Of a stretch of DNA of 64,000 bases, positions 11,651 through 64,000 are shown one piece after another. The stretch is taken from the NCBI GenBank assembly GCA_038087875.1, contig CM075988.1, forward strand, positions 15,748,001 through 15,812,000, written 5' to 3'. This DNA is from Malacoraja senta (Eukaryota). The notes under the pieces are model-generated. The model saw only the letters and a list, made by a program, of their open reading frames with translations. It searched no databases and was not told the DNA's origin. The position numbers were made by a program, and so were the translations under genes. The first letter of the stretch is position 1; each line of letters opens with the position of its first letter.

Positions 11651-14600
11651 AATGCAAATCCAAGCTAATTCCTATTCTCAGCTGAAACCATTAAAAACAG
11701 TTACATCACTGGGCAAGCTGGACTAGAGGTTACAAGTTCGAGTCCGACCATCGCAGATTAATAATTCCCAATTAAATCTTGTATTGGAAAATTAAAGCTA
11801 TCAGGTTGTTACTAAAACTCACGTCCTCTATAATGAGACCTGTGCACATTTTGGCCCGAACTAACCAGGTGATTCTTAAATGCTGCTTTGACCAGATCAG
11901 CTTCACTGGCCAAGATTTCCTTGCCTCATATTCAGGTGCAAGCATTCACTGTTATACTCGGATAGTTACAAATTGCAGAGTTCCCTACCCCCCACCCATC
12001 CTGATTCCAGGTCTAGGTTGGTAATCTCAGGTAAGTTAGGATTTTGCTAAACATTAAAAAAAAGACAACACACAGCCAAGAGAGAGATATGGTTCCACAG
12101 AGTTCTGCTAACCTCAAAATGGAAAGCCTATTAAATGGTCCGAGGGACTTCTTTAGCAATTCCTAAGATAGGGTTGCCAACTATGTATTCCACTTATAAG
12201 AAACAGGCTGAGAGTGGATGGGGTCACAATGTATAGTAGATACATTCAGGCTCAGCAATTTAAAATGGGCCCCAACTAACCTCATGTTGCCATGGACATA
12301 GCAGTAAACTAATGTTAAGTAAATGAAAGGAAGATATAATACAGGATGTGCTGGTTACTTGTTCCTGAAAATTAAACATTAAACTGTAAAGGGAACACAC
12401 AAGAAAACGTAGACAAAAACCCCTTCCGGGTTTCGGCCCGAAACGTTGCCTATTTCCTTCGCTCCATAGATGCTTCTGCACCCGCTGAGTTTCTCCAGCA
12501 TTTTTGTCTACCTTCAATTTTCCAGCATCTGCAGTTCCTTCTTAAACACAAGAAAACTTTGTGGGTTCCATTACATCCCCGCGGGACAATCTTGCAAAAT
12601 GTCTTGGTGGTATTAGATGAATCCCAGCAGTATTGTCTAAAATTCACAGCTACTTGGGCTAGAATTATGTTGTTTCCTTATGATTTAATGGACATATCTG
12701 CATTTAAAAGACATTTGGACAGGTACGTGGATAAGAAAGGTTGAGAGAGTTATGGGCCAAATGTAGGCAGGTGGGACGTGTGAACGGGGCATCTTCAGAC
12801 AAAGGGTCTGGACCCAAAACGTCACATATTCCTTTTCTCCAGAGCTGCTGCTTGACCCGCTGTGTTACTCCAGCATTTTGTGCCTATCTTTGGTGTAAAC
12901 CAGCATCTGCAGTTCCTTCATACACATCCAGTCTGATAATAATCAGATTAAACGTCTTAGAATAATAACATTATTTCTCATTACTGGAGTAACAGCTTAC
13001 TCCAATAACAAGAATGAAGTTAATGCTGTTTAAAGGAAAACTAGCCAGACTAGCCAGGGTAACTGATCAGTCCCACTTCAATAGCTCAAAATAAACACTT
13101 GTACATTCACCAGAGAGGGCAGATAATGCCTCAGATTAACATCCGAGCTGCAAGACTGCACACAACAGTGCAAGACTCCCTCAACACAGTGCTGAGATAC
13201 AAGATTACATTTTGTATACAAGTCTCTGGAATGTTACTCAAATCCACGGCTTTGATTCACGACGGACATGAATGTCTCAGTCCAGGAAGGACAGTCATAT
13301 TCCTTTAAACAAATATATGACACGCTTTCAGAATCCCACTTAGTTGCTTCACAGAAACACCACCATTGTTTAAATGTTTGTGTATGTGGTTCACAATCTT
13401 GCTAGACACTTGTCTCAATCCAATTCCTTGAAAGACAAAAAGTTTAATGGTTAAAGCCCATTCAAAAAATTGTACTCACCGCATTCAATTAATTTTGTAA
13501 ACATTTCTCATTCATTACCCAAGGCTGACACTGGTCCTTAGCCGACACTCTCAGGCATTTGTAAACTGCTTCATTACAAAATAATTTCAGAGGTGTGTCG
13601 TTGAGAATATTTGATATCCTAAACAAAGTGCTCTGAAAGACCCTCCTCTGTCTCCACCTCTAACACACCTTAATTCTTAACCCTCAGTTTCCCATTAATG
13701 TTTTCATATTCCCCATTTTGGTGAGGATCCCCTGCACTTGTCCAATCCCCAGATGTTCAGGTTTGGTTGGTGTCTCTCCCAAGGGGTCCATTACATATAA
13801 CCCCTCCACAGGATTAACGGCATGATCATGAGTCAGAACTCATCCCATCTCTTGCTGAATACCAGAAACCTGCACAGAGAGAGGACATAGGCAAATAGTG
13901 GTGGTTCAAGATCTGTGTGGTCTTCTCCCTGTCCTTGGAACTGGTTATTGGAACATTTCCTCATTTCATTCAAACATTTTTTTTGATTTAGGTTCTAATG
14001 TTAAAAATGAAGCTGTACAATAATTGTATAACTGTTATGTCAATCGCCTTATCCCTGTACAATCGCTTCTAATAAAATTAATTCAAAAAAAATAAAAAAA
14101 TTGTTAGGTGTAGGAATTGGGGAAAACGTTTCAGAGACAATAACAAATTATCTTTGATAATATTTTTGTTGCTGGGTGATATTGAAGCATTTTTCTCTGT
14201 GCTGTATTTGGCTGGGTGCATTTGAAGGGCCATTTAAAAAGTTTTACTTAGTGTTAACCCCTGAGGACCTGGCCTGTGTGCGACTGAAGGTTTTTATCTG
14301 TCAGTAATCCTGGTGGACCTGCCCTGGGTGTGGTGTGAACACGCGGTATGCACTGGAAAGTGTCTCATTGTCAGCCCTGATATCGCAGAGTGTGTGAAAT
14401 GCAGAGAAGATAGAGTCAGCAGAGAAAGGGAATATTTCTCCATTTGCATGTGATGAGAGACCGTCGCTTTAGATAGAAATATAGTTGCAAAAACAAAATG
14501 AAAGGATGCAAAGGGGGGGTAGTCTCTGCTTTTATCTGCATCAGTAACGTTGAAGTGTTTCAGTACAATGACACTGCTCTGTTAGAACACAATCAGACAG

Positions 14601-19559: not shown

Positions 19560-20457
19560 TTTTTTTAAACTTAGTTTTTAGTTTTTCTTGTCTTTGTCTC
19601 GTGGGGAATTTTGACTTTTAATGTGGGGGGGTAAGGGGAAACTATTTTCTAGGTCCCTATCTGGTCGGTGAGGCAGCCCCGTCGACACGTCCTTGTGGAC
19701 TACCAGTGGGCGTGGAGTGGCGTTTCCTGGCGGGGACTGCCCAGCACCTTCAGCTTCGGTGGCAGCACAGCACTGGAGCACTATCACGGAGCGGAGCGGG
19801 CGATGCCTTGCCTGGGTTGCCGTGCTGGAGCTCCGGTGAGCTGTGGCCGCCTTGCTCAACACCTCCGGGCTGCGGGACTGCGGAGCGGCCAGCCGCGGGC
19901 GGCGGCGCCGACCCTAACATCGGGAGCCTCGGAGCTCCAAATCGGCGTGGCCTTGTTGGCTTCAGGTGCCGCGGACTCCGGTAGGAAATCGGCCGTCCCA
20001 GGTGGCCCAGCCGCTGCGAGGACTCTCCCGACGCCGGGGCAACAACACCCGGATAGAACGGCCAGGAACATCGGGCCTCCGTAGAGGCAACTGTGGAGGC
20101 CTCAATAGGCCTGACTTTGGGTGAACTGGGGTTGGGGACTGGACATTGTGCCTTCCCCCACAGTGATAATCATTGTGGGGGGGGATGATTTTTGTCTGTA
20201 AATTATATTTTATTTTGTGTCCAAGATGGCTGCCGGAGGGGGGAGTGGACGCTGGCGCGCTTTAGCAGCTGCTGCTCTCTTCCATATTGTGTTTTTTGAT
20301 TTTTGTTTTTGGATTGAATTCTGGCTTTAATTTCTGTACTCGTGATGTCTTTACTATTTATTTCATTCCGCTTACATGTTTCTACACTTTGTTAAACTTT
20401 GTAAAGTGTCCTTGAGACTTTTGAAAGGCGCCCATAAATAAAATGTATTATTATTAT
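19560..20457 (+). mobile_element. GC/CpG-rich non-autonomous retroposon with L2-type 3' tail (second copy 28625-29522)
   Basis: Ends in TGTAAAGTGTCCTTGAG...GAAAGGCGCCCATAAATAAAATGTATTATTATTAT; sharply GC-rich body in AT-rich surroundings; no credible protein in its ORFs. Confidence 0.55.
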
Positions 20458-20721
20458 GGTCTATTATAACAAGAATTTGCTGTACGGGGACATAACAAAG
20501 GCAATTTCCCCATAAAAAAACTACACAGTTGTACTATGTGAAGTCACTGCAGAAATGAAGCTTTTAGTCTGGAATGACCCAAGAGCAAATGATCTCTACT
20601 GCATGGTGCAAGGACAACTGAACCACTGCCATTCACAGCACAAACTTTAGTTTCAAAAACCTTCATTTGGTATCAGCCAAGAACACAGGACAAGTTGGCA
20701 ATCAAATTTAAAAAGTGGCTT

Positions 20722-20847
20722 TTTATTTAATATACATTTTCAAACATTTCCATTGGAGATTAAAAAAAACGTCTAATGCCAAGTTAAACACTGACCTATT
20801 ATAATATAAACATCTGTAATAAGAATTTAAATCTTAACATAATAAAA
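20722..20847 (-). promoter_or_regulatory. BTG4 3' UTR polyadenylation signal and CPE motifs (copy at +9065)
   Basis: On the minus strand: UUUUAU (20847-20842), UUUUUUUUAAU (20769-20759), AAUAAA (20727-20722), then a U/GU-rich stretch. Confidence 0.65.
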
Positions 20848-21046
20848 TTTGTCCTCGAGGAAGTTTAAGAGATCGTGTAAATAAGTGTAGATGAGCTCAA
20901 TGCTAGAACACCAAATTCATCTCCTATAGAACGTCAGAACACGCAGACTTGTCAGTAAATCTTCTGGATTGCCAGAAAATTGACTTCACAATACGATAAA
21001 GTAAGAGAAGGAAAATAGAGCAAGATAAAGGAAAGGACAATTCAGA

Positions 21047-24000
21047 TCAGTGCTTGGTATTTACCCAATGATACCGATCATTGTGAGGATATGTGAACAT
21101 ATGGTTGGAAACTCTGTACATTTTGTAGACTTTTTGGAGAGGGTAGCAGCCTTTAGTATCTTCTGTGATAGTTTTCTTGTGTGTAAACCTGGGCCAGACA
21201 GCTGCATGGTATGTGTAGTAATCATACTGCAAGAAAACAAAATGACAATTACTTAAAGCAACTCAGTTACAATACGTGGTCCAAACAGTTCAGTCTAGAG
21301 ATTCAGCGTGGAAACGGGCCCTTCAGCCCACTGAGTTCATGTTCACCACCAATCACCTGTTCACACAATTCCTGCATTACCGAACTCAATCATCAAGTTC
21401 GCCGACGACACCACAGTTGTGGGACGTATCACTGATGGAGTCGAGTCAGAGTATAGAAGTGAGATCGACCGGTTGACCAAATGGTGCCAGCACAATAACC
21501 TGGCTCTCAACACCAGCAAAACCAAGGAACTGATTGTGGACTTTGGAAGGAGTAGGATGGAGACCCACAGTCCTATACATATATACAGAGTTCCCACAGA
21601 CAGCACACAGAGTCTGGTTCAAACCTGGGTCTCTGGCACTGTGAGGCTGCAACTCTACCAGCTGTCCCCCCCCCCCCCCCCCATCACAATGTGGTATATT
21701 TTTGTAGTATCTTCAGATTTGTATCCAATGATCATCATGTTCAATTAATGCACTGCCTCAGAACAGACCTGGAGATCTCTCTACCCAACAAAGTGTTCTC
21801 TTATAAAACTAGATTTCTCCATTGACATTTATGGTATGGTTTACATCCAACTATTTCCAGTTTGTTTCAATTGCCCAGATTCTTCAGCATTTGCCCATTT
21901 CATATTACTTCCACTTTAGATAATATTGCCCACCAGTCAAATCCCAAACCAACTTCAGGGAAGTTGTCCATGTCCTTCAGCGTTGCAAGTAAATTAGATC
22001 AGGGTACGGTCTGTCGTTTAATTTTCCCTGAGCTAATCTACAATTGAAGAAAAATACTAAAGATTCCTTCCAATTTCAGATTTACTAACTGTCCTCGCCA
22101 CATTTACTTAAATTTTTTTTATTTTTTTAAAAATAAACAGCTGATCTGTAGAAAATAGATTTAAATCTGCAGTACCCTGCATACCAAATTAGAGACAAGA
22201 GTAAAGCATTTTGGCCAATGGTTTAATATCATTTTCATTTCACCTTGTACAGGTTAGCACCATAATGAATGGATGGATCTCAGCCTTGGGACATTTCAGC
22301 ATTGAAAATTACAGGCAAGCGTCATCCTGTCCCCTTTGTAAGCATCTGCTTCCAGCTGTTACTGGATAGATTAAATCCATAAGCAAGTAGGTTCACATTG
22401 AATTACCCCTTTTCAGAAAGGAAAAACACTTGGCACCTTTTGCCCCAAGCAACAGAGTTATATACCCTGTAGCAGAGTGTTATTTCTTAATGGGAAGCTA
22501 ATCAAGGGTATCATTTAACAAAACACTCGAGTATCAGTAATACATACTTATGCAACTGACAATATGCTAGCCAGTTTTTGTTAATAATCTTAGAACAGGA
22601 TTTTAACTTGCAAGTATAGATAGCAAGATGATTAACAATGTTGATCCTGTCTCATTAAGGAAATATTAAAACAAATATTTTGCTCACTCTTTATTTCAGT
22701 TGACAAACATAAATGTACTCAGTTTTCAGGGCAACATGTTATTAAGACACCACAGCTTCTTCGGTCTGAAGAAGGGTCTCGACCAGAAACGTCCCCTATT
22801 CCTTCACTCCATAAATGCTGCCTCACCCGCTGAGTTTCTCCAGCATTTGTCTACCTTAGATGTTTCCAGCATCTGCAGTTCTTTCTTAAACAGCTTCTAA
22901 ATAGTTTGTTGAAGATTGCTACAAGGTGGAGCACCAAGACAATTAAAAAAAAATCAAAGTTGGCTTTCAAGAAGCACAAGCTTATTGGCAATGGGTGTTT
23001 GACTGACTGTCACAAAATCCTTTTAGCTCTTAAAATACTAAAATATCTAAATTGAGAGCCACTGGAAATACCTTGGCAGTGAACTCTACTACTATACCTG
23101 GTAGATGCTCTTTGGGTTAATCACAGTGGGGATGGTTTGGGGTTCTTCTCCAGGGATTTCTCCTCCCCCAAAGCCGTTGCCCATGTAAATACTGTTTGGG
23201 TTGCTCACGATTGGTATGGTCTTTGTTTCTGAAGCTGCAGTGAAGTTTTCCTCTTCCCCATGGGCATTGCTTCGAGCATAAATTGCACTCAGCTCTTTGT
23301 TATAGTTTTCCTCATCTGAAGATGTACCAGAGAAATAATCCGAACTTGCTCGTTCTGCTGCATTGCTGATGTGCTTGAAGACTTCCTGATTAGAGTTCTG
23401 TTCCTCCAACCTCGTTATAATGAATGGCTGGTTCTTTTCGCCACACCTGAAATAAGAGTACATCAGTCAAACAATTGACTACCAAACTTATTTATACCCC
23501 AAGTCCCCATCAGTTTGTGGGAGAACAGTCTCTGATGATTTTAAGTGATTCAGGAACAACTTCTTCCCAACAACCATCATTACTAACACCAACAAAACTA
23601 CAAACTTTCTTGGCTATTGTTCAGACCTTGAAATTCTGGGGGCACTAATTGACCAGAATATTTAAACTTAACCCTTACCTACACCACACTTCATATGGAT
23701 CCACCCATATAGTGAGCTCCTTCGGCAGTTCCAAAGAAGAATATTCAATATTGCTTTCTACACAAGCCTGAAAGAGGACCAGATCCCGTGGTTGATTCTT
23801 GTTTATTCTGATACACCTGGAGAAAAACATTTTGTCAGGGAACACAACAAGATAATATCAGCCAAATTGGGCCATGTGTGATGGCCCAACAACACTCTCC
23901 TCAAATGCTCTCTTCTGTGAAAGGAAAATTGAAACAAGATGCTTCAAACCACCAAATTCCATTTTATTGGTGCTAGATTTTCATATGAACACTATTTGAA

Positions 24001-24938
24001 ATTCTTCTTCTCACATCTAAAAAATATTTTAAAACATCACACTGCTGTGGGGCTAATCCCAGTAAGTATGCTAGGACCCCCCCCCCCCCCCCCCCCACTT
24101 TGAAGAACCAGTTGCAGCCATGCGAGAATTAATTTCTCCATCCTTCTAATTTCACCGCCAATATGGATTTAAAATTAAACAGATGCAGTTGTCTTAGTGG
24201 GATGCAAACCTTCAGCTCAGAATCATGAAGCTAGGATTATTTGTCCAGTTAAAACTACCATGTTTACTACAGTGAACATTCCAATTCACCCAGAAGAATC
24301 TAGTTTGATTGTTGCCCACAAGCAATATTTAAAATGAATATTGGCAGTTTTCCAGGTGTATTATCTTTATCCAATATAACCACAAAACCAATTGTCTGAT
24401 GATATTTCTTCTCCCCACCCAAAGGAAAAGAACCAATTTCACTGAACTAGGCTACTCGACAGCCCCACAACTGTCAGAAAGGAAGGGACATTTCAATGCT
24501 TTGAAAGGCACTAAACAATCAAGAGTCCATGCTTGTTCAGTTTCAATGTAAATCACAATCCCAACAAGGTCGAGGTTCAGACAAGGCAATAATGCCTTCT
24601 TAGCAAGATCAGCCATGATCACAATGAATGGCTCGAAGGGCCAAATGGCCTCCTCTTGCACCTATTTTCTATGTCTCACAAAAGACACATTTATTGGGTC
24701 ATGTATTACAACCACATCCAAAGCAATATATCCAAATGTTTCCAGCTAAGACAGTACATTCCTACCTGTAGGCTTGTCCTCTAGAAGGGTTTCCACAGTA
24801 CCAGTGGTTCTTGTATTTTTGAAATAGTATTTTTGTCAGTTTGTTCCCAAATTTCTCCATCTTCTGCTTGCTGAATTTCTCATTTTTCTTCACCAGTCGG
24901 GTGATGAAAACTACTGTGGCAGCAATCTCTTCTTTCAT
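21047..24938 (-). CDS. BTG4: BTG4 (BTG/Tob family, maternal B9.10-like), copy 1; 4 coding exons, 279 aa
   Basis: Exons 24938-24766 (173 nt, [18 protein letters not shown]...[14 protein letters not shown]); 23816-23679 (138 nt, CIRINK...[17 protein letters not shown]; boxes A/B); 23446-23098 (CGEKNQPF...[15 protein letters not shown]...NPKSIYQ); 21226-21047 (...[10 protein letters not shown]). All GT-AG with consistent phase. RASSD/NPKSIYQ motifs and synteny with miR-34b/c and HOATZ favour BTG4 over BTG3. Confidence 0.93.
21370..21585 (+). mobile_element. LINE RT fragment (Rex1/Babar-like) inserted in a minus-strand HE1 SINE (21290-21665); copy at +9065
   Basis: Translates [52 protein letters not shown]; SINE tail lies to the left and SINE head to the right. 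Confidence 0.75.
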
Positions 24939-25339
24939 GGTTTCAATAAATTGTACCTGGAAGGTTAATTAGATTTTTAACAAAGTCTTCCCTGTGCGAC
25001 AGGTAACAACAATTCATGTCAGAGACAGTTAAAATAAACTTCAACCCAAAATACTTTTTTTTGTATTGTCACACATTTAAAGAGGGAAGACCATCAGCCC
25101 AAGTCTGAGCTGCCATTTCCAATTCAATTAATCATGCAAGGAAACTAAAAAGGATATAATTTAGCACATACATGACATGGTTTTACTTACGCAAGTCAGA
25201 ATACATTGGAATAACTTAACTCAATTGAAATGTTAATTGGCATGAATAGGTTTCAATAGCACCTTTTCAAAACTCAAGACAATGATTCAAGAAGAATTCA
25301 TTGCATTTACAGCAAGAGGCATTTACCCCTGTGAGGTGG

Positions 25340-26405
25340 GCAACTTATGGAAGAGGGATTCTGAGGGATAAGATATACTTGCATTTACAAAGGCTAGGTT
25401 TGATTAGGGATAGTCAGTATGGTTTTGAACAGAAGATCATATCTCAAAGTTAATCAAGTTTTATGAAGCAGTAACCAAGGAGGTCATCGAGAGCAGAGCA
25501 GTGGACATGGTCTGTATGGCCTTCAAGGTTCTAGGAGGCAAACTGCTATGGAAGGTTGGATCGTATGGAATCCAGCTACAGCTAGCTAATTACATGCATA
25601 ATCAACTTGATGGTAGGAAGCAAAGGGTGACGATGGAAGGTTGCACAGACTGGAGGTCCGTGACCAGTGATGTGGCTCATGTCTCACTGTTTGTGCCCAT
25701 ATCAATGATTTGGATGAGAATGTACAAGGCATTATTGCAAGTTTGGAGATGATACTACATAGACAGTGAAGGTGTTATCAAGAATTACAAGTGACGCCAA
25801 ATTCAGAAGGTATTGCATTTTGGGAAGTCTTTACTTCCCAAATGCTTCACAACTTCACAACAGTGCAGTCGTTTTCTGAGGGGAGTTGTAAAGCAGAGTA
25901 ATCTATGAGTACAAGTATATACTTCCCAAAAGTGTCAGGTGAACAAGGTGGATTTCATCAGTAAGAGCATCGAGTATGGAGATTGGAATGTTATGTCCTG
26001 CTGTAGAAGATGTTGGCAAGGCCACACTTGGGGTGTTGTGTTCATCTCTGGTCACTCTGCTACAGGAAATATGCCATAAGCTGGAGAGAGTGCAGAAAAG
26101 ATACAAGGATGTTGACAGTACTAGAAGGGCAGAGTTATAGAGAGTGGCTAGGTAGGCTGAGACTTTATTTCCTGGAGTTTAAAGAACCCAAGGGGTGATC
26201 TTATGCAAGTGTATAAAATCATGAGGAGCAAAAGGTGAAGATAGTCTTCTTCCCCCTAGAAAAAGAGGGCATACATTTAAAATGAGAGGGAAAGATTAAA
26301 TAGGATGCAGAGGAGCAAGCATATGGAACAAGTTAACAGATGAAGTGATTGAGACAAGTACAGATTACCATTTAAAAGACATTTGGACAGGTACATGGAT
26401 AGATA
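25340..26405 (+). mobile_element. Degenerate CR1 LINE (copy at 34405-35470)
   Basis: Frameshifted RT remnants: KLLWKVGSYGIQ...GRKQRV.MEG..DWRSVTS, RPHLG..V..WS, LERVQK. Confidence 0.75.
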
Positions 26406-27166
26406 ACATAATTTGGGTAACAAGGCAAATGGGTGACATTGCAGGTTGAGACCCTTCTGACTTCTCCAGTCTGAAGAAGGGTCTCAACCCCAAACATCAC
26501 CCATTACTTCTCTCTAGAGATGCTGCCTGTCCCGCTGAGTTACTCCAGCTTTTTGTGTCTATCTTAGACCATTACTTAGAGAGAAGATTTAATATCACTG
26601 ATGCAGCCAGTGAGCTCTCATCACCACCTAATGGCCAGCAGGGCTCAGTGCATACAAAGTCTTCCAGTGGTTTCAAAGACAAACTCAAGTTGCAGTCACT
26701 AAAAGTATCATACTCAGCCTCTCACAAGAACATGAAAGAAAATTCTCTCAATATGTTCACCATAAAAGTACATTAAAAAAAATCAGTAGATTTCAGGAGA
26801 GCAAAATGTTACAGCCACTGCCTCAGTGCCAGAGGCCAGAGTTCAATCCTGGTCTCAGGTGTTGTTGCATGGTGTAAATGTCCTCCTTGTGACCATGTCA
26901 GGTGCTCTAGTTTCCTCCCACAGCCCAAAGACATGCAGGTTGTGGATTAATTGGACACCACAAATCACCCCTAGTGTGCAAATGAGTGGGAGAATCTTGG
27001 ATAGTGTAATGCATGTAAATTGATGGTTAGCTCAGATTCAGCCAGCTGAATAATTGCTGCTGTGCCGTATCTCTATGAATTTGTTAGAACATGTCATTTA
27101 AAAGATAAAAAAATATTGAAAATACTTATCCAGCAGGATTTATGGAGAGTGAAATTGTTAATTTCC

Positions 27167-27366
27167 NNNNNNNNNNNNNNNNNNNNNNNNNNNNNNNNNN
27201 NNNNNNNNNNNNNNNNNNNNNNNNNNNNNNNNNNNNNNNNNNNNNNNNNNNNNNNNNNNNNNNNNNNNNNNNNNNNNNNNNNNNNNNNNNNNNNNNNNNN
27301 NNNNNNNNNNNNNNNNNNNNNNNNNNNNNNNNNNNNNNNNNNNNNNNNNNNNNNNNNNNNNNNNNN
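27167..27366. other. Assembly gap (200 N)
   Basis: Run of exactly 200 N. Confidence 1.
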
Positions 27367-30300
27367 CTAGAGATGCTGTGTGGCCTGTTGAATTACTCCA
27401 ACATCATGTCTATCTGCACTAATTCCCTTTGATTCTCCCCACATCCATAGAATCTCCTGCTCAAAGTTTCATCTCGGAACTGGAGTCAATTTAGATACCA
27501 ACTAGCAAGTGTTTGACATTTGTGGAGACAAACACCTGAAGGGAACCAGTGGTGAGAACTTGCAAGCTCCACACAGTCAGCAGCAGAGTTCACAACTGAA
27601 GCACCGTCAATGGAGTTGGAGCAGCTGCTTTACTTACTGGATCAGCGGACTACTCATTTATAAATCAAAAAGAGCTTTGAATGTCATTGATACATACTGT
27701 TACCCATGCCATTTTAGCAGCTCAGGCCAAAGCCAGCAAGGCAGCTGAATGAAGAGAGTTATGTTATTGTGGGTAGAATGAATCTTGGGGGATTGAAAGT
27801 AAATAACTGCCTGCTCAATGGTGTCCTTGCAATCAGAGCCTGAAAAAAAACAAATCAAAGGATCAATCTTGGGAATCAAGATGAGTCTCATTCTTCACAC
27901 TGATGCCGCTGTTCCACACATGCCAAGGATGTGGGCACCCATTATGACCAAGGTACCATCTTTTGGACTTTTATCTGCAGCAGGTCCTACTCCTTTGCTG
28001 TTGGTTTCTTGGATTGAGATCCAGAGGTAAGGGATTAGCATTGCACAACATGTATATGGTGGTGCAACTCTAGAATAGGTGTCTCCATGCAATGGACACC
28101 TCGTCCTTCTAGGCGAGCTGCAGTTTGGTGGGGTATCAAGTAACATTGGCAAGTTGTGCAGAGCTTCCTGTTTATAGTATACCATTGAATGGGGGTCTAG
28201 AATGGATACAATAAGTCCCTGCCTGCCATCATGCCACTCCTCACAAGGAGAGCTACAACATTTGCTGCACCATCAGTGTTCCAATGCAGTAAACCCTCAT
28301 TTTTAAAAGTCTCTATTAAAATAATATTGGTTATAGCAGGCAGATTTACCAAACTTCACTGCCAGGCCAGCCCCTGGCTGCATCTGCCATCACTGCCTGT
28401 ATTGAGACCTTGGAGCTTTGTAGCTTAGGGCAGGCAAGGCATTGCTTTAATGTTTCAGCTGAAAAAAGGCACCTCTGTCAGTATGGTTCTTGCTCTGCTT
28501 AAACTTTATTTCTGGCCCTCTGCACATGAACTGACATGCAGTACCACAAATGCCACTTTTATAGCAGACAATCTGCAATATCTTGGGGAACGGCTGCTAA
28601 CCAGCAGCCGTCCATTAAATTCACTTTTTTTAAACTTAGTTTTTAGTTTTTCTTGTCTTTGTCTCGTGGGGAATTTTGACTTTTAATGTGGGGGGGTAAG
28701 GGGAAACTATTTTCTAGGTCCCTATCTGGTCGGTGAGGCAGCCCCGTCGACACGTCCTTGTGGACTACCAGTGGGCGTGGAGTGGCGTTTCCTGGCGGGG
28801 ACTGCCCAGCACCTTCAGCTTCGGTGGCAGCACAGCACTGGAGCACTATCACGGAGCGGAGCGGGCGATGCCTTGCCTGGGTTGCCGTGCTGGAGCTCCG
28901 GTGAGCTGTGGCCGCCTTGCTCAACACCTCCGGGCTGCGGGACTGCGGAGCGGCCAGCCGCGGGCGGCGGCGCCGACCCTAACATCGGGAGCCTCGGAGC
29001 TCCAAATCGGCGTGGCCTTGTTGGCTTCAGGTGCCGCGGACTCCGGTAGGAAATCGGCCGTCCCAGGTGGCCCAGCCGCTGCGAGGACTCTCCCGACGCC
29101 GGGGCAACAACACCCGGATAGAACGGCCAGGAACATCGGGCCTCCGTAGAGGCAACTGTGGAGGCCTCAATAGGCCTGACTTTGGGTGAACTGGGGTTGG
29201 GGACTGGACATTGTGCCTTCCCCCACAGTGATAATCATTGTGGGGGGGGATGATTTTTGTCTGTAAATTATATTTTATTTTGTGTCCAAGATGGCTGCCG
29301 GAGGGGGGAGTGGACGCTGGCGCGCTTTAGCAGCTGCTGCTCTCTTCCATATTGTGTTTTTTGATTTTTGTTTTTGGATTGAATTCTGGCTTTAATTTCT
29401 GTACTCGTGATGTCTTTACTATTTATTTCATTCCGCTTACATGTTTCTACACTTTGTTAAACTTTGTAAAGTGTCCTTGAGACTTTTGAAAGGCGCCCAT
29501 AAATAAAATGTATTATTATTATGGTCTATTATAACAAGAATTTGCTGTACGGGGACATAACAAAGGCAATTTCCCCATAAAAAAACTACACAGTTGTACT
29601 ATGTGAAGTCACTGCAGAAATGAAGCTTTTAGTCTGGAATGACCCAAGAGCAAATGATCTCTACTGCATGGTGCAAGGACAACTGAACCACTGCCATTCA
29701 CAGCACAAACTTTAGTTTCAAAAACCTTCATTTGGTATCAGCCAAGAACACAGGACAAGTTGGCAATCAAATTTAAAAAGTGGCTTTTTATTTAATATAC
29801 ATTTTCAAACATTTCCATTGGAGATTAAAAAAAACGTCTAATGCCAAGTTAAACACTGACCTATTATAATATAAACATCTGTAATAAGAATTTAAATCTT
29901 AACATAATAAAATTTGTCCTCGAGGAAGTTTAAGAGATCGTGTAAATAAGTGTAGATGAGCTCAATGCTAGAACACCAAATTCATCTCCTATAGAACGTC
30001 AGAACACGCAGACTTGTCAGTAAATCTTCTGGATTGCCAGAAAATTGACTTCACAATACGATAAAGTAAGAGAAGGAAAATAGAGCAAGATAAAGGAAAG
30101 GACAATTCAGATCAGTGCTTGGTATTTACCCAATGATACCGATCATTGTGAGGATATGTGAACATATGGTTGGAAACTCTGTACATTTTGTAGACTTTTT
30201 GGAGAGGGTAGCAGCCTTTAGTATCTTCTGTGATAGTTTTCTTGTGTGTAAACCTGGGCCAGACAGCTGCATGGTATGTGTAGTAATCATACTGCAAGAA

Positions 30301-33300
30301 AACAAAATGACAATTACTTAAAGCAACTCAGTTACAATACGTGGTCCAAACAGTTCAGTCTAGAGATTCAGCGTGGAAACGGGCCCTTCAGCCCACTGAG
30401 TTCATGTTCACCACCAATCACCTGTTCACACAATTCCTGCATTACCGAACTCAATCATCAAGTTCGCCGACGACACCACAGTTGTGGGACGTATCACTGA
30501 TGGAGTCGAGTCAGAGTATAGAAGTGAGATCGACCGGTTGACCAAATGGTGCCAGCACAATAACCTGGCTCTCAACACCAGCAAAACCAAGGAACTGATT
30601 GTGGACTTTGGAAGGAGTAGGATGGAGACCCACAGTCCTATACATATATACAGAGTTCCCACAGACAGCACACAGAGTCTGGTTCAAACCTGGGTCTCTG
30701 GCACTGTGAGGCTGCAACTCTACCAGCTGTCCCCCCCCCCCCCCCCCATCACAATGTGGTATATTTTTGTAGTATCTTCAGATTTGTATCCAATGATCAT
30801 CATGTTCAATTAATGCACTGCCTCAGAACAGACCTGGAGATCTCTCTACCCAACAAAGTGTTCTCTTATAAAACTAGATTTCTCCATTGACATTTATGGT
30901 ATGGTTTACATCCAACTATTTCCAGTTTGTTTCAATTGCCCAGATTCTTCAGCATTTGCCCATTTCATATTACTTCCACTTTAGATAATATTGCCCACCA
31001 GTCAAATCCCAAACCAACTTCAGGGAAGTTGTCCATGTCCTTCAGCGTTGCAAGTAAATTAGATCAGGGTACGGTCTGTCGTTTAATTTTCCCTGAGCTA
31101 ATCTACAATTGAAGAAAAATACTAAAGATTCCTTCCAATTTCAGATTTACTAACTGTCCTCGCCACATTTACTTAAATTTTTTTTATTTTTTTAAAAATA
31201 AACAGCTGATCTGTAGAAAATAGATTTAAATCTGCAGTACCCTGCATACCAAATTAGAGACAAGAGTAAAGCATTTTGGCCAATGGTTTAATATCATTTT
31301 CATTTCACCTTGTACAGGTTAGCACCATAATGAATGGATGGATCTCAGCCTTGGGACATTTCAGCATTGAAAATTACAGGCAAGCGTCATCCTGTCCCCT
31401 TTGTAAGCATCTGCTTCCAGCTGTTACTGGATAGATTAAATCCATAAGCAAGTAGGTTCACATTGAATTACCCCTTTTCAGAAAGGAAAAACACTTGGCA
31501 CCTTTTGCCCCAAGCAACAGAGTTATATACCCTGTAGCAGAGTGTTATTTCTTAATGGGAAGCTAATCAAGGGTATCATTTAACAAAACACTCGAGTATC
31601 AGTAATACATACTTATGCAACTGACAATATGCTAGCCAGTTTTTGTTAATAATCTTAGAACAGGATTTTAACTTGCAAGTATAGATAGCAAGATGATTAA
31701 CAATGTTGATCCTGTCTCATTAAGGAAATATTAAAACAAATATTTTGCTCACTCTTTATTTCAGTTGACAAACATAAATGTACTCAGTTTTCAGGGCAAC
31801 ATGTTATTAAGACACCACAGCTTCTTCGGTCTGAAGAAGGGTCTCGACCAGAAACGTCCCCTATTCCTTCACTCCATAAATGCTGCCTCACCCGCTGAGT
31901 TTCTCCAGCATTTGTCTACCTTAGATGTTTCCAGCATCTGCAGTTCTTTCTTAAACAGCTTCTAAATAGTTTGTTGAAGATTGCTACAAGGTGGAGCACC
32001 AAGACAATTAAAAAAAAATCAAAGTTGGCTTTCAAGAAGCACAAGCTTATTGGCAATGGGTGTTTGACTGACTGTCACAAAATCCTTTTAGCTCTTAAAA
32101 TACTAAAATATCTAAATTGAGAGCCACTGGAAATACCTTGGCAGTGAACTCTACTACTATACCTGGTAGATGCTCTTTGGGTTAATCACAGTGGGGATGG
32201 TTTGGGGTTCTTCTCCAGGGATTTCTCCTCCCCCAAAGCCGTTGCCCATGTAAATACTGTTTGGGTTGCTCACGATTGGTATGGTCTTTGTTTCTGAAGC
32301 TGCAGTGAAGTTTTCCTCTTCCCCATGGGCATTGCTTCGAGCATAAATTGCACTCAGCTCTTTGTTATAGTTTTCCTCATCTGAAGATGTACCAGAGAAA
32401 TAATCCGAACTTGCTCGTTCTGCTGCATTGCTGATGTGCTTGAAGACTTCCTGATTAGAGTTCTGTTCCTCCAACCTCGTTATAATGAATGGCTGGTTCT
32501 TTTCGCCACACCTGAAATAAGAGTACATCAGTCAAACAATTGACTACCAAACTTATTTATACCCCAAGTCCCCATCAGTTTGTGGGAGAACAGTCTCTGA
32601 TGATTTTAAGTGATTCAGGAACAACTTCTTCCCAACAACCATCATTACTAACACCAACAAAACTACAAACTTTCTTGGCTATTGTTCAGACCTTGAAATT
32701 CTGGGGGCACTAATTGACCAGAATATTTAAACTTAACCCTTACCTACACCACACTTCATATGGATCCACCCATATAGTGAGCTCCTTCGGCAGTTCCAAA
32801 GAAGAATATTCAATATTGCTTTCTACACAAGCCTGAAAGAGGACCAGATCCCGTGGTTGATTCTTGTTTATTCTGATACACCTGGAGAAAAACATTTTGT
32901 CAGGGAACACAACAAGATAATATCAGCCAAATTGGGCCATGTGTGATGGCCCAACAACACTCTCCTCAAATGCTCTCTTCTGTGAAAGGAAAATTGAAAC
33001 AAGATGCTTCAAACCACCAAATTCCATTTTATTGGTGCTAGATTTTCATATGAACACTATTTGAAATTCTTCTTCTCACATCTAAAAAATATTTTAAAAC
33101 ATCACACTGCTGTGGGGCTAATCCCAGTAAGTATGCTAGGACCCCCCCCCCCCCCCCCCCCACTTTGAAGAACCAGTTGCAGCCATGCGAGAATTAATTT
33201 CTCCATCCTTCTAATTTCACCGCCAATATGGATTTAAAATTAAACAGATGCAGTTGTCTTAGTGGGATGCAAACCTTCAGCTCAGAATCATGAAGCTAGG

Positions 33301-36231
33301 ATTATTTGTCCAGTTAAAACTACCATGTTTACTACAGTGAACATTCCAATTCACCCAGAAGAATCTAGTTTGATTGTTGCCCACAAGCAATATTTAAAAT
33401 GAATATTGGCAGTTTTCCAGGTGTATTATCTTTATCCAATATAACCACAAAACCAATTGTCTGATGATATTTCTTCTCCCCACCCAAAGGAAAAGAACCA
33501 ATTTCACTGAACTAGGCTACTCGACAGCCCCACAACTGTCAGAAAGGAAGGGACATTTCAATGCTTTGAAAGGCACTAAACAATCAAGAGTCCATGCTTG
33601 TTCAGTTTCAATGTAAATCACAATCCCAACAAGGTCGAGGTTCAGACAAGGCAATAATGCCTTCTTAGCAAGATCAGCCATGATCACAATGAATGGCTCG
33701 AAGGGCCAAATGGCCTCCTCTTGCACCTATTTTCTATGTCTCACAAAAGACACATTTATTGGGTCATGTATTACAACCACATCCAAAGCAATATATCCAA
33801 ATGTTTCCAGCTAAGACAGTACATTCCTACCTGTAGGCTTGTCCTCTAGAAGGGTTTCCACAGTACCAGTGGTTCTTGTATTTTTGAAATAGTATTTTTG
33901 TCAGTTTGTTCCCAAATTTCTCCATCTTCTGCTTGCTGAATTTCTCATTTTTCTTCACCAGTCGGGTGATGAAAACTACTGTGGCAGCAATCTCTTCTTT
34001 CATGGTTTCAATAAATTGTACCTGGAAGGTTAATTAGATTTTTAACAAAGTCTTCCCTGTGCGACAGGTAACAACAATTCATGTCAGAGACAGTTAAAAT
34101 AAACTTCAACCCAAAATACTTTTTTTTGTATTGTCACACATTTAAAGAGGGAAGACCATCAGCCCAAGTCTGAGCTGCCATTTCCAATTCAATTAATCAT
34201 GCAAGGAAACTAAAAAGGATATAATTTAGCACATACATGACATGGTTTTACTTACGCAAGTCAGAATACATTGGAATAACTTAACTCAATTGAAATGTTA
34301 ATTGGCATGAATAGGTTTCAATAGCACCTTTTCAAAACTCAAGACAATGATTCAAGAAGAATTCATTGCATTTACAGCAAGAGGCATTTACCCCTGTGAG
34401 GTGGGCAACTTATGGAAGAGGGATTCTGAGGGATAAGATATACTTGCATTTACAAAGGCTAGGTTTGATTAGGGATAGTCAGTATGGTTTTGAACAGAAG
34501 ATCATATCTCAAAGTTAATCAAGTTTTATGAAGCAGTAACCAAGGAGGTCATCGAGAGCAGAGCAGTGGACATGGTCTGTATGGCCTTCAAGGTTCTAGG
34601 AGGCAAACTGCTATGGAAGGTTGGATCGTATGGAATCCAGCTACAGCTAGCTAATTACATGCATAATCAACTTGATGGTAGGAAGCAAAGGGTGACGATG
34701 GAAGGTTGCACAGACTGGAGGTCCGTGACCAGTGATGTGGCTCATGTCTCACTGTTTGTGCCCATATCAATGATTTGGATGAGAATGTACAAGGCATTAT
34801 TGCAAGTTTGGAGATGATACTACATAGACAGTGAAGGTGTTATCAAGAATTACAAGTGACGCCAAATTCAGAAGGTATTGCATTTTGGGAAGTCTTTACT
34901 TCCCAAATGCTTCACAACTTCACAACAGTGCAGTCGTTTTCTGAGGGGAGTTGTAAAGCAGAGTAATCTATGAGTACAAGTATATACTTCCCAAAAGTGT
35001 CAGGTGAACAAGGTGGATTTCATCAGTAAGAGCATCGAGTATGGAGATTGGAATGTTATGTCCTGCTGTAGAAGATGTTGGCAAGGCCACACTTGGGGTG
35101 TTGTGTTCATCTCTGGTCACTCTGCTACAGGAAATATGCCATAAGCTGGAGAGAGTGCAGAAAAGATACAAGGATGTTGACAGTACTAGAAGGGCAGAGT
35201 TATAGAGAGTGGCTAGGTAGGCTGAGACTTTATTTCCTGGAGTTTAAAGAACCCAAGGGGTGATCTTATGCAAGTGTATAAAATCATGAGGAGCAAAAGG
35301 TGAAGATAGTCTTCTTCCCCCTAGAAAAAGAGGGCATACATTTAAAATGAGAGGGAAAGATTAAATAGGATGCAGAGGAGCAAGCATATGGAACAAGTTA
35401 ACAGATGAAGTGATTGAGACAAGTACAGATTACCATTTAAAAGACATTTGGACAGGTACATGGATAGATAACATAATTTGGGTAACAAGGCAAATGGGTG
35501 ACATTGCAGGTTGAGACCCTTCTGACTTCTCCAGTCTGAAGAAGGGTCTCAACCCCAAACATCACCCATTACTTCTCTCTAGAGATGCTGCCTGTCCCGC
35601 TGAGTTACTCCAGCTTTTTGTGTCTATCTTAGACCATTACTTAGAGAGAAGATTTAATATCACTGATGCAGCCAGTGAGCTCTCATCACCACCTAATGGC
35701 CAGCAGGGCTCAGTGCATACAAAGTCTTCCAGTGGTTTCAAAGACAAACTCAAGTTGCAGTCACTAAAAGTATCATACTCAGCCTCTCACAAGAACATGA
35801 AAGAAAATTCTCTCAATATGTTCACCATAAAAGTACATTAAAAAAAATCAGTAGATTTCAGGAGAGCAAAATGTTACAGCCACTGCCTCAGTGCCAGAGG
35901 CCAGAGTTCAATCCTGGTCTCAGGTGTTGTTGCATGGTGTAAATGTCCTCCTTGTGACCATGTCAGGTGCTCTAGTTTCCTCCCACAGCCCAAAGACATG
36001 CAGGTTGTGGATTAATTGGACACCACAAATCACCCCTAGTGTGCAAATGAGTGGGAGAATCTTGGATAGTGTAATGCATGTAAATTGATGGTTAGCTCAG
36101 ATTCAGCCAGCTGAATAATTGCTGCTGTGCCGTATCTCTATGAATTTGTTAGAACATGTCATTTAAAAGATAAAAAAATATTGAAAATACTTATCCAGCA
36201 GGATTTATGGAGAGTGAAATTGTTAATTTCC
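27367..36231. repeat. Copy 2 of the ~8.87 kb duplication
   Basis: Begins CTAGAGATGCTGTGTGG as at 18301 and matches to ...GTTAATTTCC at 36231, after which unique sequence continues. Confidence 0.97.
30112..34003 (-). CDS. BTG4: BTG4, copy 2 (identical coding sequence; contiguous with the upstream promoter side)
   Basis: Exons 34003-33831, 32881-32744, 32511-32163, 30291-30112 (copy 1 + 9065). An acceptor at 34021 leaves 18 nt of 5' UTR, so a non-coding first exon lies further upstream. Confidence 0.93.
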
Positions 36232-59970: not shown

Positions 59971-62900
59971 TCAGAATTTCATCTTGAATTGGGTACAACA
60001 AGGACCAAGGGAGAATGGACGGATTGTGAAAGATTTAATGCCAGTTTCCAGGAACTGAACACGGTGGACATTTTAACTTGTTAAATCTTAACGTGGCTTT
60101 TGATAAAGTTGAAAACACTGTACTTTATGATCACGTGCTTTCTATTAATACCCGGACCATCGTAATTAACACCTTTAATGTTTCGATGCATGTTGAGTTT
60201 CTGTATATTAAATAAAACCTTTTTGGGACTTGTTTCTCTGATTGTTCTTGAGGCCAATGTCTTCCAGACTACCATTGCAGATTTCACGAATATGTTGGTG
60301 GAAGGAAAGGGGAGGGTGCACCGTACGGGTTGGATACTTCAGTGTGCGTTGGGAGGAACTGCAGATACTGGTTTACACCGAAGGCAGACACAAAGCTGGA
60401 GTAACTCAACGGGTCAGACAGCATCTCTGGAGAAAATGAATATGTGACGCATTGGGGTCTCAAGAAGGGTCTCGATGCGAATCGTCACGTATTACTTTTC
60501 TCCAGAGATGCTGACTGAGACGCTGAGTTGCTCCAGCATTTTATTTCTATGGCTATATAATTTCTCGGGTTCAACTCTAATATTTGAGAAGGATGAGATC
60601 TATCCAGCAGAATGGGTAGAAGCAACCAATTACATGGATTTATTCCTGTTTTTGGGAGCAACAATTGATCAGACTCAAGAGACGGGGGTTTTCACGCCAT
60701 TCGTTTGGATGCATAAGAAACTGTAGATACTGGAATCCTGAGCACAAAAAAAAAACAAATTGCTGGGGGAATTCAGCGGTTCAGGCAGCATCTATGGAGG
60801 GACGTTTCGGGTCGGGGCTTTTGGAAACATTTCTTTGCATAGCTCGATCGTATTTTAGTGCAGTGTGCTCGTGCTCCGGGCAAACCGTAAACTGGAAACT
60901 TTCCATAAAAACAAAACTAAGGACACATTTTGCATGACTTGAACGCCGTCAACCCTGAAATTATATGACGAATACAGTTAGCAGCGGTACCTGACAAATG
61001 TTCCTGCTCCTTCAGGAAATAGTGGAAGCGAAGCGGCGAAACTGTACGGGCTAACATGTAACCCTCGAGTTCTTCTCTCAAACGGCCGTGCTCAACCACT
61101 GCGCTGATTTTATTTTTTTGTGCGTGTTTAGGAAGGAACTGCAGATGCTGGTTTGAACCGAAGATAGACACAAAAATGCTGGAGTAACTCAGCAGGACAG
61201 GCAGCATCACTGGAGAGAAAGAATGGAAGTTTCGGGTCGAGATCCTTCTTCAGACTCCAGCATTTTGTATCTATCTTTTTTGTGCGTGTCGGGTATCAGT
61301 CTGGGAATGAAATGCAATTTTTTTTCTTCATTTTCCCCATTATCAAGATCAAGTATTCGCCGAGCTACTGGGATGGTTCAAATGTTTTTTAAAAAGTCTT
61401 GATTATGTCCTAACTATTCCCAACTTCAAAAGTGCACCACTTTAATGCCAATGTACTTTTGACGTCTCCTGTAAAAGGATAAATTGTGGCTGGGCCCTGC
61501 TTACACCAGAGACAAAGAAAAGCGAACCCCAATACTCTTTCCTGGTGAAAGTTTTCCGGCTTAAAACTAACAATGTTTCTCGCTCTCTAGATGCTGCCTG
61601 AACGGCGGGTTCCTCTCATTCCTTCCTTTTCATCGCATTCATTGTATTAGTGCAAGTTCACAGACTGCTCAAGCACAGAACGCGTCAATATGACACAGCG
61701 CACAGTGGAGAAAAATGCACTCGTTATATATACATTTATTTGAAGCAATTTATCCTCCCCCATCCTAACTCGCGTGTTCTCCACGAAGCTAAACCTCGAG
61801 AAACAAACTCTTCAATAAAACCAGTTATTATATTTTATAATTCAGAGGGCCCTCGGTGATAAAGAGGTAAACAATGTACATCAAACAATGAGTAAAATAA
61901 TGGAACGCAATGTTCACTGAAATGTCATTTATATGAAAATATATATTACTGCTAACATTACGCGGCGTCGCACAAACAAAATACTGTATGTTCTTTCCTG
62001 GAGTTAGTTTCCTGAGCCCACGCCATTCTGGCCACACCCTCTCCTCGCTGCTACTATGGGGAAGAAAGTACTGAGAGCCAGTTACCCATTAGGTTCCAGA
62101 ACCATTCTGCACAATCCTACCTCACGCAATCTAACCATACCAACCCACTAGCGACTTAGCACTACTATGTTTCCCTCGCTTTTTCAACTTAACGTAGAAT
62201 AACTGATTTTGTATTCTTAATGGTGTAGGTGTGTCTTATATGCCTGTAATGCTGCAGCAAATAAGAATTTAATTGTCCCGGTTCATATCCAGTGCACATG
62301 GCAAATAAAGACACTTTCATATTTTGCCAAAATATTTCTATGGTATTTTGATGTCTAATCGGCCAAACTCGCGTATTTGTGTTTCCAATTCTACCATCTT
62401 TAATGCACAAGGTTTTGCAAAAAGAAAAACAATCAGAGAATATTGTGCTAGACAAAAATGCTGGAGAAACTCAGCGGGTGAGGCAGCATCTATGGAGCTA
62501 AGGAAATAGGCAATGTTTCGGGCCGAAACCCTTCTTCAGACTCTTGTTCTGTTAGCAGAATATTGTGCTACGATGTTACAGTGTCGCAGCTACGGATAAA
62601 CTGCAGATGTTTTAAAAAGTGCACGGGCCGCATTGTGATAAATTGGGAGATCGGGACTACACCCATTGCGTATGAGCGGTCAGTTCAGTAGTCAAATCAG
62701 TTATCGTGTCCCAGCCTCTATTTTGCAGCTTCCTCTCCCATCCCTTCATCCTATTCAATGTGCCCGAAGAAAGGTCCCGTCCCGAAAAGTCGCCTCTTCA
62801 TTTCCTCCGCAGATTCTGCCTGGCCCGCTGAGTTCCTCCATCATTTTGTGTTTTGCTCAATATTTCGGCATCTACTGTTCGTTGTGTCTCCGCTCTATTC

Positions 62901-63194: not shown

Positions 63195-63560
63195 CGGCCA
63201 GGGTACCCCGGTCACGTGCGCCCCGGAACGCCATCACCACAGGAGACCGTTGCCACGGGAACGGCCCGCATTAGCTTCCATTCCGCCGCTGGGTGGGAGA
63301 CGCGCTCAGTGATTGGTCGTTCTGGTCCCGGCCGGAACACTGCGCCGCGCGCCCCCGGGGTTGCTATGGTGAGTAGCGGCCGCGCGCCTCCAGGGTTGCT
63401 ATGGCGAGGAGCGACTGCGCGCCCTCCGGTTGCCATGGTGAGGAGCGGCCGCGCGCCCCCAGGGTTGCCATGGTGAGGAGCGGCCGCGCGCCCCTGGGTT
63501 GCCATGCTGAGGAGCGGCCGCGCGCCCCCGGGTTGCCATGGCGAGGAGCAGCGGCGAGCG
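63195..63560 (+). promoter_or_regulatory. HOATZ CpG-island promoter with RFX X-box, E-box and CCAAT box
   Basis: GTCACGTG (63211), GTTGCCACGGGAAC (63249-63262), ATTGG (63312), then six tandem X-box-like motifs; very CpG-rich. Confidence 0.7.
63345..63549. repeat. 34-35 bp minisatellite, 6 copies, each with GTTGC(C/T)ATG(G/C)(T/C)GA
   Basis: Motif starts at 63360, 63395, 63429, 63464, 63498, 63532; unit ~GGGTTGCCATGGTGAGGAGCGGCCGCGCGCCCCC. Confidence 0.95.
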
Positions 63561-63807
63561 ATGGCCGAGGTTCACCTGCCGGCCGAGGCCGGGCCCAAGC
63601 CGGAGCCGGAGACGGAGGCCGAGGCCGAGACCGACTCTCGCTCCCTCTACACCGTGTTCGCCGGGTCCTCGCCGGAGGACGTTGCCTACGCCAAAGTGTT
63701 CTGGAGCTCGCTGTCGCTGCAGCCGCCGCTCGAGTCCCGTCTGGTGTCTGGAGACATCAAGCAGCGGCTGAAGGCGGCGCCGCCCGCAGGGTGCAAGCCC
63801 TCCAAAG
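63561..63807 (+). CDS. HOATZ: HOATZ (C11orf88, cilia- and flagella-associated) coding exon 1; gene continues beyond the window
   Basis: MAEVHLP...[44 protein letters not shown] matches the HOATZ motif VFAGSS..D...AK.FW.S....PP.ES.LV...QRL. Good Kozak context (GCGATGG), probable donor AAG|GTGATG after 63807, expected position downstream of miR-34b/c. Confidence 0.88.
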
Positions 63808-64000
63808 GTGATGGAAGAGGAGGGGAGGAGGACGAAGGAATGCGGAGAGAGGGGGAACGAAGGGAGGGGAGGGGAGACGAAGGGATGGGAGGATGCAGGG
63901 AGGGGAGGATGCAGGGATGGATGAGAAGGAGGACCAAGGGATGGGGGTAGGAGGACCAAGGGATGGGGGGGGGGGGGGGGGGGGGGTAAGAGGACGAAGG

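Follow-up and report, generated by a model that had tools for sequence, protein, structure and literature searches.

A minisatellite built on a predicted RFX site directly upstream of HOATZ in skates and sharks

What does it mean for a gene to carry the same transcription factor site many times over, in tandem, directly in front of its start codon? The question is raised by a stretch of 64,000 nucleotides from the skate Malacoraja senta (assembly GCA_038087875.1, contig CM075988.1, positions 15,748,001 to 15,812,000 of the forward strand; hereafter the window), in which a minisatellite occupies the sequence immediately upstream of the ciliary gene HOATZ. Each of its units carries a predicted X-box, the type of site bound by RFX factors. 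The HOATZ loci of seven other species were retrieved through the orthologous proteins, with one assembly per species, and the comparison among elasmobranchs covers the skates Rhinoraja longicauda, Leucoraja erinacea and Amblyraja radiata, the sawfish Pristis pectinata, and the sharks Heptranchias perlo (sevengill shark) and Stegostoma tigrinum (zebra shark). We find that arrays are present at the same X-box in several lineages. The explanation that we favor, with a probability of roughly 60%, is a promoter minisatellite that would act as a homotypic cluster of RFX sites, that is, of several sites for the same factor.

Structure of the array and quality of its X-boxes

The gene behind the array is identified by its first exon. 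The open reading frame (ORF) starting at the ATG at 63561 matches the HOATZ-like family of Pfam (PF17664) over its first 83 codons with E=1.4e-20, and these codons are 89% identical to HOATZ of Rhinoraja. The exon-1 protein of M. senta is distinct from those of Rhinoraja, Leucoraja and Amblyraja. In the mouse, sperm flagella and ependymal cilia depend on Hoatz, a candidate Foxj1-dependent gene (PMC7132099).

Tandem Repeats Finder (TRF) places the array at 63344-63556, with a period of 34, 6.2 copies, 85% matches and a score of 301. Head-to-tail units of 10-100 bp define a minisatellite, and the M. senta array is one by this definition. The X-boxes of its units lie 29-201 bp upstream of the HOATZ ATG. 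An initial annotation of this DNA had listed six starts of GTTGC[CT] in the array and a solitary X-box farther upstream, and a motif search found every one of them exactly where it had been placed (Table 1). The same annotation let six units of 34-35 bp end 11 nt before the ATG. The array itself stands as described; its end needs qualifying, since TRF runs a partial last unit to 5 nt before the ATG and the distance of 11 nt is counted from where the last well-matched unit stops (63549/50).

The initial annotation had also named a widespread genomic satellite as an alternative origin of the unit. No further copy of the 34-mer occurs in the 64-kb window at three or fewer mismatches, where the chance expectation is also none. 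Across about 470 kb of related loci, the conserved core GTTGCCATGG is found at HOATZ promoters only, except for a lone site at window position 12286. That site lies within the only other RFX2 match of at least 0.88 in the window (12281-12299; 0.885, minus strand), which is isolated. We rejected a dispersed satellite because no other unit copies are present in the window or the related loci, and an assembly artefact because the array is present in six independent assemblies.

The units were scored as RFX sites with the JASPAR position weight matrices (PWMs) for RFX2 (MA0600.1, full site) and RFX5 (MA0510.1, half site), taken from Table S4 of PMC5838959, at the threshold used in that paper, 80% relative score. 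All six pass with both matrices, at 0.863-0.931 for RFX2 on the minus strand and at 0.908-0.956 for RFX5, and four of them also pass with RFX2 on the plus strand. Under the same implementation the validated human X-boxes (Table S5 of the same paper) score 0.815-0.952. The background of RFX2 sites of at least 0.90 outside promoters is 0.015 per kb over 470 kb of the window and related loci. The prediction that the units are RFX-type X-boxes is supported by these scores.

The units also have the composition proposed for them, one strong and one imperfect half-site. The strong half is GTTGCC. The second half of skate units reads GGTGAG or GGCGAG, and on the minus strand this weak half (CTCACC or CTCGCC) ranks at the 98-99th percentile of all hexamers. 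A perfect half joined to a random partner scores 0.807 on average and reaches 0.90 in 4% of cases; most units of the M. senta array score 0.90-0.93. The units are two inverted half-sites, more than lone half-sites. Compared by eye with the relaxed X-box consensus RYYRYY N1-3 RRNRAC (Laurencon 2007, in the form quoted in PMC4168999), five of the six skate units, the standard ones, agree at 11 of 12 positions, the last C being G, and unit 5 (GCTGAG) agrees at 10 of 12. The Stegostoma units and the distal box agree at all 12.

Arrays at the same X-box in several lineages

All four skates and both sharks carry an array at this place. In Leucoraja, TRF reports 6.3 copies of 34 bp at 97% match, and GTTGCCATGG is present eight times, including a 10-bp micro-duplication. 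The Amblyraja array comprises about five units (34 bp x 4.6, 91% match), and that of Rhinoraja about nine (35 bp x 6.6 plus two more distal units, 85% match). Among the sharks, Heptranchias has six near-identical units (34 bp x 6.1, 98% match) and Stegostoma seven to eight (31 bp x 7.4, 93% match).

The sawfish provides the single-copy state. TRF detects no tandem repeat in the HOATZ promoter of Pristis, and a single GTTGCCATGGCGAA lies 29 nt before its ATG, the position taken by the last unit in all four skates. Pristis shares further landmarks with the skates, namely GTCACGTG with its CACGTG, the distal X-box and the inverted CCAAT box. Two AT-rich, teleost-like assemblies likewise have single X-boxes only at HOATZ. 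The X-box motif is conserved at orthologous HOATZ promoters, these two loci included, and its proximal copy stands at -29 in the five batoids, at -31 in Stegostoma and at -44 in Heptranchias. The single proximal site of Pristis and the single sites of the teleost-like assemblies therefore indicate that the skate array was amplified from an ancestral site, as the initial annotation had supposed for a promoter X-box. Taking origin and structure jointly, we are highly confident that the ancestral proximal X-box and some 20 bp of its flank gave rise to the skate array by amplification.

Copy number between species is 1 in the sawfish, 5, 6, 8 and 9 in the skates, and 6 and 7-8 in the two sharks. 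The array had initially been regarded as a variable number tandem repeat of one species; the variation is borne out between species, but the restriction to one species is not, as arrays are present in four skates and two sharks. Within the skates, the spacer variant GACTGCG is common to unit 2 of M. senta and the first units of Amblyraja at matching positions, and the skate array therefore predates those genera.

Relationships are less uniform beyond the skates. Skate and Heptranchias spacers are identical at 14 of 20 positions in register and have a shared 10-mer and the same period, which gives p=0.008 in shuffles and p=0.14 with free rotation. The Stegostoma spacer is unrelated to those of skates and Heptranchias (p=0.36-0.85), and the X-box is the sole common part. 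It follows from this unrelated spacer that either the X-box was amplified at least twice, or one very old array was kept and altered over time, having collapsed in the sawfish. Only about 2.5% of the sequence in the sampled loci belongs to minisatellites of this size class, so that arrays at one and the same 14-bp site are unlikely to be a repeated coincidence.

Further rearrangements were observed in and near the arrays. One unit of the Rhinoraja array (locus ~9730-9766) is interrupted by a 35-bp inverted copy of a part of HOATZ exon 1 (10188-10222), a small inverted duplication. The Heptranchias locus contains a second minisatellite at 9357-9605, about 400 bp upstream of the HOATZ ATG, composed of a G-run and CAATCTCTGAG, with a TRF consensus period of 83 and three copies.

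Candidate roles of the array

The mechanism that we propose begins with tandem duplication of the ancestral ATG-proximal X-box and its GC-rich flank of about 20 bp, which slippage or unequal exchange within the CpG island could have brought about. The units retain imperfect palindromic X-boxes, each with a perfect half, GTTGCC, and a fair half. The approximately 200 bp before HOATZ would then offer six RFX dimer sites in addition to a seventh, distal one, where the ancestral promoter would have had two. Most likely they would work together as a homotypic cluster of sites of the RFX2/RFX3 type, with transcription starting a short way downstream, within the last unit or after it. Such a cluster would raise RFX occupancy and hence HOATZ transcription in multiciliated cells and spermatids, and its copy number would drift between lineages. 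RFX binding, the position of the start site and any effect of dose are inferences.

An alternative explanation is that the minisatellite is a passenger. Only the ATG-proximal X-box, possibly together with the distal one, would matter; a slippage-prone, GC-rich flank in the CpG island would copy the site, and the extra copies would be tolerated, decay neutrally and be renewed by turnover, leaving copy number without regulatory meaning. Slippage is seen to be ongoing in Leucoraja, whose 10-bp micro-duplication affects the X-box itself, and recent copying would explain the perfect X-boxes of the Leucoraja and Heptranchias arrays (97-98% identical).

Several observations favor the passenger explanation and weigh against a functional cluster. 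Differences from the unit consensus within arrays affect 26 of 546 positions of the 14-nt core (4.8%) and 45 of 645 of the spacer (7.0%), which is not a significant difference (Fisher p=0.11). The Rhinoraja array is old (85% identical), and GTTGCC survives there in the ATG-proximal copy alone, with an RFX2 score of 0.918; the other copies have all changed and now read GTCGCC, GTCGTC, GTCTCC or GTTACC, five of them scoring 0.84-0.88 and two falling below the 0.80 threshold. This is the pattern that would be expected if a single copy were under selection, and a single proximal copy suffices in the sawfish. Other observations count against the RFX cluster more generally. The strict classical X-box consensus GTNRCC N0-3 RGYAAC, reportedly that of Emery et al. 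1996, is matched by no unit or distal box in any elasmobranch locus; the scan for it gave no matches in elasmobranch promoters, and the published matrices were used instead. No FOXJ1-type RYMAAYA motif occurs within 700 bp upstream of HOATZ in skates, sawfish or Stegostoma, and a single one, at -680, occurs in Heptranchias; a local FOX plus RFX module, which we considered, is unsupported for this reason. The segment with the CCAAT box has been lost in Leucoraja and Amblyraja without apparent harm. The effect of homotypic site number is factor-specific, and the factors tested in PMC6360817 do not include RFX. In C. elegans, synthetic 3x half-site repeats failed to drive expression, which full-motif repeats did (bioRxiv 10.1101/2021.02.03.429678).

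Other features argue against neutrality of the copies. The same 14-bp site is arrayed in skates, in a squalomorph and in a galeomorph shark, in sampled sequence of which minisatellites make up only about 2.5%, and the Stegostoma unit is built on a different spacer. Either the site was targeted repeatedly or the array is older than the split between sharks and batoids, and both are atypical of neutral minisatellites. The changes seen in Rhinoraja are confined to positions at which X-boxes are known to vary, and the majority of the changed units remain above the PWM threshold. High-scoring X-boxes are retained by every unit in five of the six arrays. On balance, we consider it possible, if on the unlikely side, that the extra copies are mere passengers.

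How far the multiplicity itself matters is a separate question. That the extra copies contribute measurably to expression is a view we hold tentatively, at somewhat below even odds. The copy-number "dial" suggested in the initial annotation has mixed support from the evidence above, and we place it between doubtful and tentative. A further step would be to regard the array as a selected device. Elasmobranchs would have kept a multimerised RFX site since before the shark-batoid split, or repeatedly rebuilt it; phased RFX dimers would make transcription in spermatids and multiciliated cells higher or more switch-like, and copy number would be an evolvable expression knob. Skates and the sevengill shark have the 34-bp period and a similar spacer in common, and in the zebra shark a different spacer surrounds the same core. 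We judge selection of this kind unlikely.

A third explanation places the transcription start site (TSS) upstream of the array, which would become a transcribed leader. The unit ATGs, in the strong context GCCATGG, would act as upstream open reading frames (uORFs) throttling HOATZ translation, or an in-frame copy would provide an N-terminal extension. The reading-frame arithmetic of the initial annotation is correct in this respect: the ATG at 63504 shares the frame of the main ATG and leads into it without a stop, adding 19 codons, the frame opened at 63435 closes after 13 codons, and among the six unit ATGs all three frames occur in rotation. Every unit ATG has a purine at -3 and a G at +4. 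In addition, the RefSeq HOATZ protein of Amblyraja (XP_032905699) starts at an ATG inside the array (locus 10001-10093) and has a 31-residue, repeat-encoded N-terminus absent from the other orthologs. This start hints that some transcripts begin upstream of two to three units, a further point against a start in or after the last unit.

The N-terminal extension that had been envisaged is nevertheless unlikely, and we rejected a coding role: the unit lengths of 34, 35 and 31 bp are not multiples of three, frames differ between species, and the in-frame ATG shifts position or is absent, Rhinoraja having none that would lengthen the ORF. The canonical Met-Ala/Gly-Glu start is conserved in all orthologs, and the annotated coding sequences of Leucoraja, Heptranchias and Stegostoma pass over available upstream in-frame ATGs. 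A practical point is that the repeat-encoded N-terminus of the RefSeq Amblyraja protein is probably a spurious annotation artefact. Set against the Amblyraja start, the annotated starts are weak and conflicting evidence on whether the array is promoter or leader.

A further point concerns the ATG within the proximal X-box, at -23. Each of the five batoids has it, the sawfish among them, out of frame and overlapping the main ATG. Because this ATG in strong context would impair HOATZ translation even in the single-copy sawfish, it suggests a transcription start downstream of the X-boxes, in or after the last unit. Such a position would fit reports of X-boxes very close to the TSS (PMC5838959, PMC4168999). 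Five or more strong out-of-frame upstream ATGs would nearly abolish translation of HOATZ. Given that each unit contributes another upstream ATG in strong context, with the frame changing along the array, we regard the array as probably promoter and not leader or coding sequence. A role as transcribed leader appears highly improbable.

That the conserved GTTGCCATGG core serves a factor other than RFX, or that the array is merely a structural part of the CpG island, is hardly credible: no unit matches the strict X-box consensus and the literature searched yielded Foxj1 dependence of HOATZ alone and no RFX dependence, but the units score as high on the PWM as validated X-boxes do, the second half-site matches much better than a random one would, the motif class is kept at the HOATZ promoter from teleost-like fish to sharks while the flanks diverge, and HOATZ belongs to the motile-cilia class controlled by RFX factors.

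The surrounding locus and comparison with known systems

The features of the M. senta promoter are collected in Table 1. At the distal X-box, the block GACCGTTG is invariant in the alignment. A segment of about 95 bp with the inverted CCAAT box (window 63263-63359) is absent from Leucoraja (locus 9745-9760) and Amblyraja (locus 9915-9930), where the array abuts the distal X-box.

Table 1. Features of the HOATZ promoter and first exon in the M. senta window
Feature	Positions	Strand	Evidence
Conserved GTCACGTG, E-box-like, upstream of the distal X-box	63211..63218		GTCACGT invariant in six-species alignment; final G missing in Amblyraja
Distal solitary X-box GTTGCCACGGGAAC	63249..63262	+	RFX2 PWM 0.871 (+), 0.895 (-); kept in skates, sawfish and sevengill shark
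Inverted CCAAT box (ATTGG), between distal X-box and array	63312..63316	-	Kept in M. senta, Rhinoraja, Pristis and Heptranchias; lost by deletion from Leucoraja and Amblyraja
Minisatellite with units of 34-35 bp (X-box and ~20-nt GC-rich spacer), 6.2 copies head to tail	63344..63556	+	TRF, unit table
X-box unit 1, GTTGCT AT GGTGAG	63360..63373	+	RFX2 PWM 0.902 (-)
X-box unit 2, GTTGCT AT GGCGAG	63395..63408	+	RFX2 PWM 0.901 (-), 0.808 (+)
X-box unit 3, GTTGCC AT GGTGAG	63429..63442	+	RFX2 PWM 0.931 (-), 0.812 (+)
X-box unit 4, GTTGCC AT GGTGAG	63464..63477	+	RFX2 PWM 0.907 (-), 0.812 (+)
X-box unit 5, weakest, GTTGCC AT GCTGAG; ATG 63504 in HOATZ frame	63498..63511	+	RFX2 PWM 0.863 (-)
X-box unit 6, proximal, GTTGCC AT GGCGAG; ancestral position -29 from ATG	63532..63545	+	RFX2 PWM 0.930 (-), 0.848 (+); orthologous in position to the one copy of Pristis
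HOATZ exon 1, coding part	63561..63807	+	Pfam PF17664 E=1.4e-20; orthologs; GT donor at 63808 inferred from ortholog proteins reading ...PSK|D
CpG island containing promoter, array and exon 1	63200..63810		GC 0.71, CpG observed/expected 0.98, versus 0.44 and 0.51 for the whole window

Farther upstream, two mir-34 precursors forming the mir-34b/c cluster (Rfam RF00456; 59156-59226 and 59895-59967 on the plus strand, 54.9 and 68 bits) lie 3.4 kb from HOATZ on the same strand. The pair is also found upstream of HOATZ in Leucoraja, Rhinoraja, Pristis, Heptranchias and Stegostoma. In Amblyraja, an insertion of about 6.3 kb (locus 2606-8895) between sequences that are adjacent in the window (~62315-62326) moves mir-34b/c out of the 10-kb flank. 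BTG4 exons follow still farther upstream on the opposite strand, and the skate locus matches the arrangement of BTG4 and miR-34b/c described from zebrafish to human (PMC11166285). BTG4-like exons appear twice on the minus strand of the window (23678-24938 and 32743-34003) because the stretch before a run of N (27167-27366) is repeated identically after it: positions 20000-27166 and 29065-36231 are 100% identical over at least 7.2 kb, the second stretch starting 1.7 kb after the gap. This looks like an assembly duplication at the gap and not a real gene duplicate.

On the other side of exon 1, the beginning of HOATZ intron 1 is occupied in skates and sawfish by a long, purine-rich repeat with G runs (GGGGAGG/GGA) (window 63810-64000; Rhinoraja locus 10255-10450; Pristis locus 10230-10500). 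In M. senta it includes a run of 22 G at 63965-63986.

Tuning by site number is usually tested with synthetic constructs. HOATZ offers a natural orthologous series of site numbers at one well-defined cilia gene, with flanks otherwise conserved and two spacer designs around the same core. Should copy number matter, HOATZ would provide the first natural case of a multimerised X-box promoter in the literature searched, in which we found no report of a natural X-box tandem array and no paper linking C11orf88/HOATZ to RFX. It would also be a case of long-term maintenance, or of convergent rebuilding, of a binding-site minisatellite. If copy number is irrelevant, the locus would be a clean example of a functional motif that hitch-hikes in a neutral minisatellite and looks designed, and would call for caution in motif-based readings of repeats.

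Among known ciliary promoters, single and paired X-boxes are the closest counterparts. RFX target genes have their X-boxes concentrated within +/-500 bp of the TSS (PMC5838959), and pairs with one relaxed member are reported for motile-cilia genes, the HEATR2 promoter having one strong and one relaxed site (PMC4168999). MAP1A has two X-boxes at +33 to +80 (Table S5 of PMC5838959), and its 3' site, GTTGCCATGGAGAC, exactly matches the opening 14 nt of a Stegostoma unit. The elasmobranch sites resemble these in motif class, in lying within a few hundred bp of the gene start, in combining one good and one degenerate half and in having a motile-cilia target. They differ in that the arrays consist of six to nine register-locked, head-to-tail minisatellite copies and not of one or two independent sites, and in that RFX binding is here predicted.

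Head-to-tail X-boxes before a coding sequence have an artificial parallel in the synthetic 3x klp-6 X-box variant reporters of C. elegans (bioRxiv 10.1101/2021.02.03.429678). In those constructs full-motif repeats can suffice and half-site repeats do not, whereas the HOATZ units, with a strong and a fair half, are intermediate. A resemblance of another kind concerns the Rhinoraja units (locus 9690-9950), which read GTCG where the ancestral X-box has GTTG, a T-to-CpG change at position 3 that is a caveat on the drift of this array. As summarised in PMC3185043, the methylation-dependent MDBP/RFX1 tolerates C for T when the cytosine is methylated. The likeness to these sites is one of sequence only, and the CpG island around the array is probably unmethylated.

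Homotypic site clusters, as in the 2010 work discussed in PMC6360817, likewise place several sites for the same factor in a proximal promoter, with cooperativity, lateral diffusion and redundancy as proposed benefits. Typical clusters are, however, irregularly spaced and do not derive from recent tandem duplication, and the factors measured in that account, for which the effect of site number is factor-specific, do not include RFX.

Tandemly repeated transcription factor sites in promoters are themselves of a known kind (PMC3899988). As in the HOATZ array, the unit holds the binding site, so that the number of units is the number of sites, and copy number differs between genomes. The HOATZ array differs in its factor, predicted to be RFX, in its ciliary target gene and in the level of its variation, which lies between species and spans skates and sharks, not within a species as polymorphism. 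The array adds a new example to this known class, and the comparative pattern among elasmobranchs is its most interesting part.

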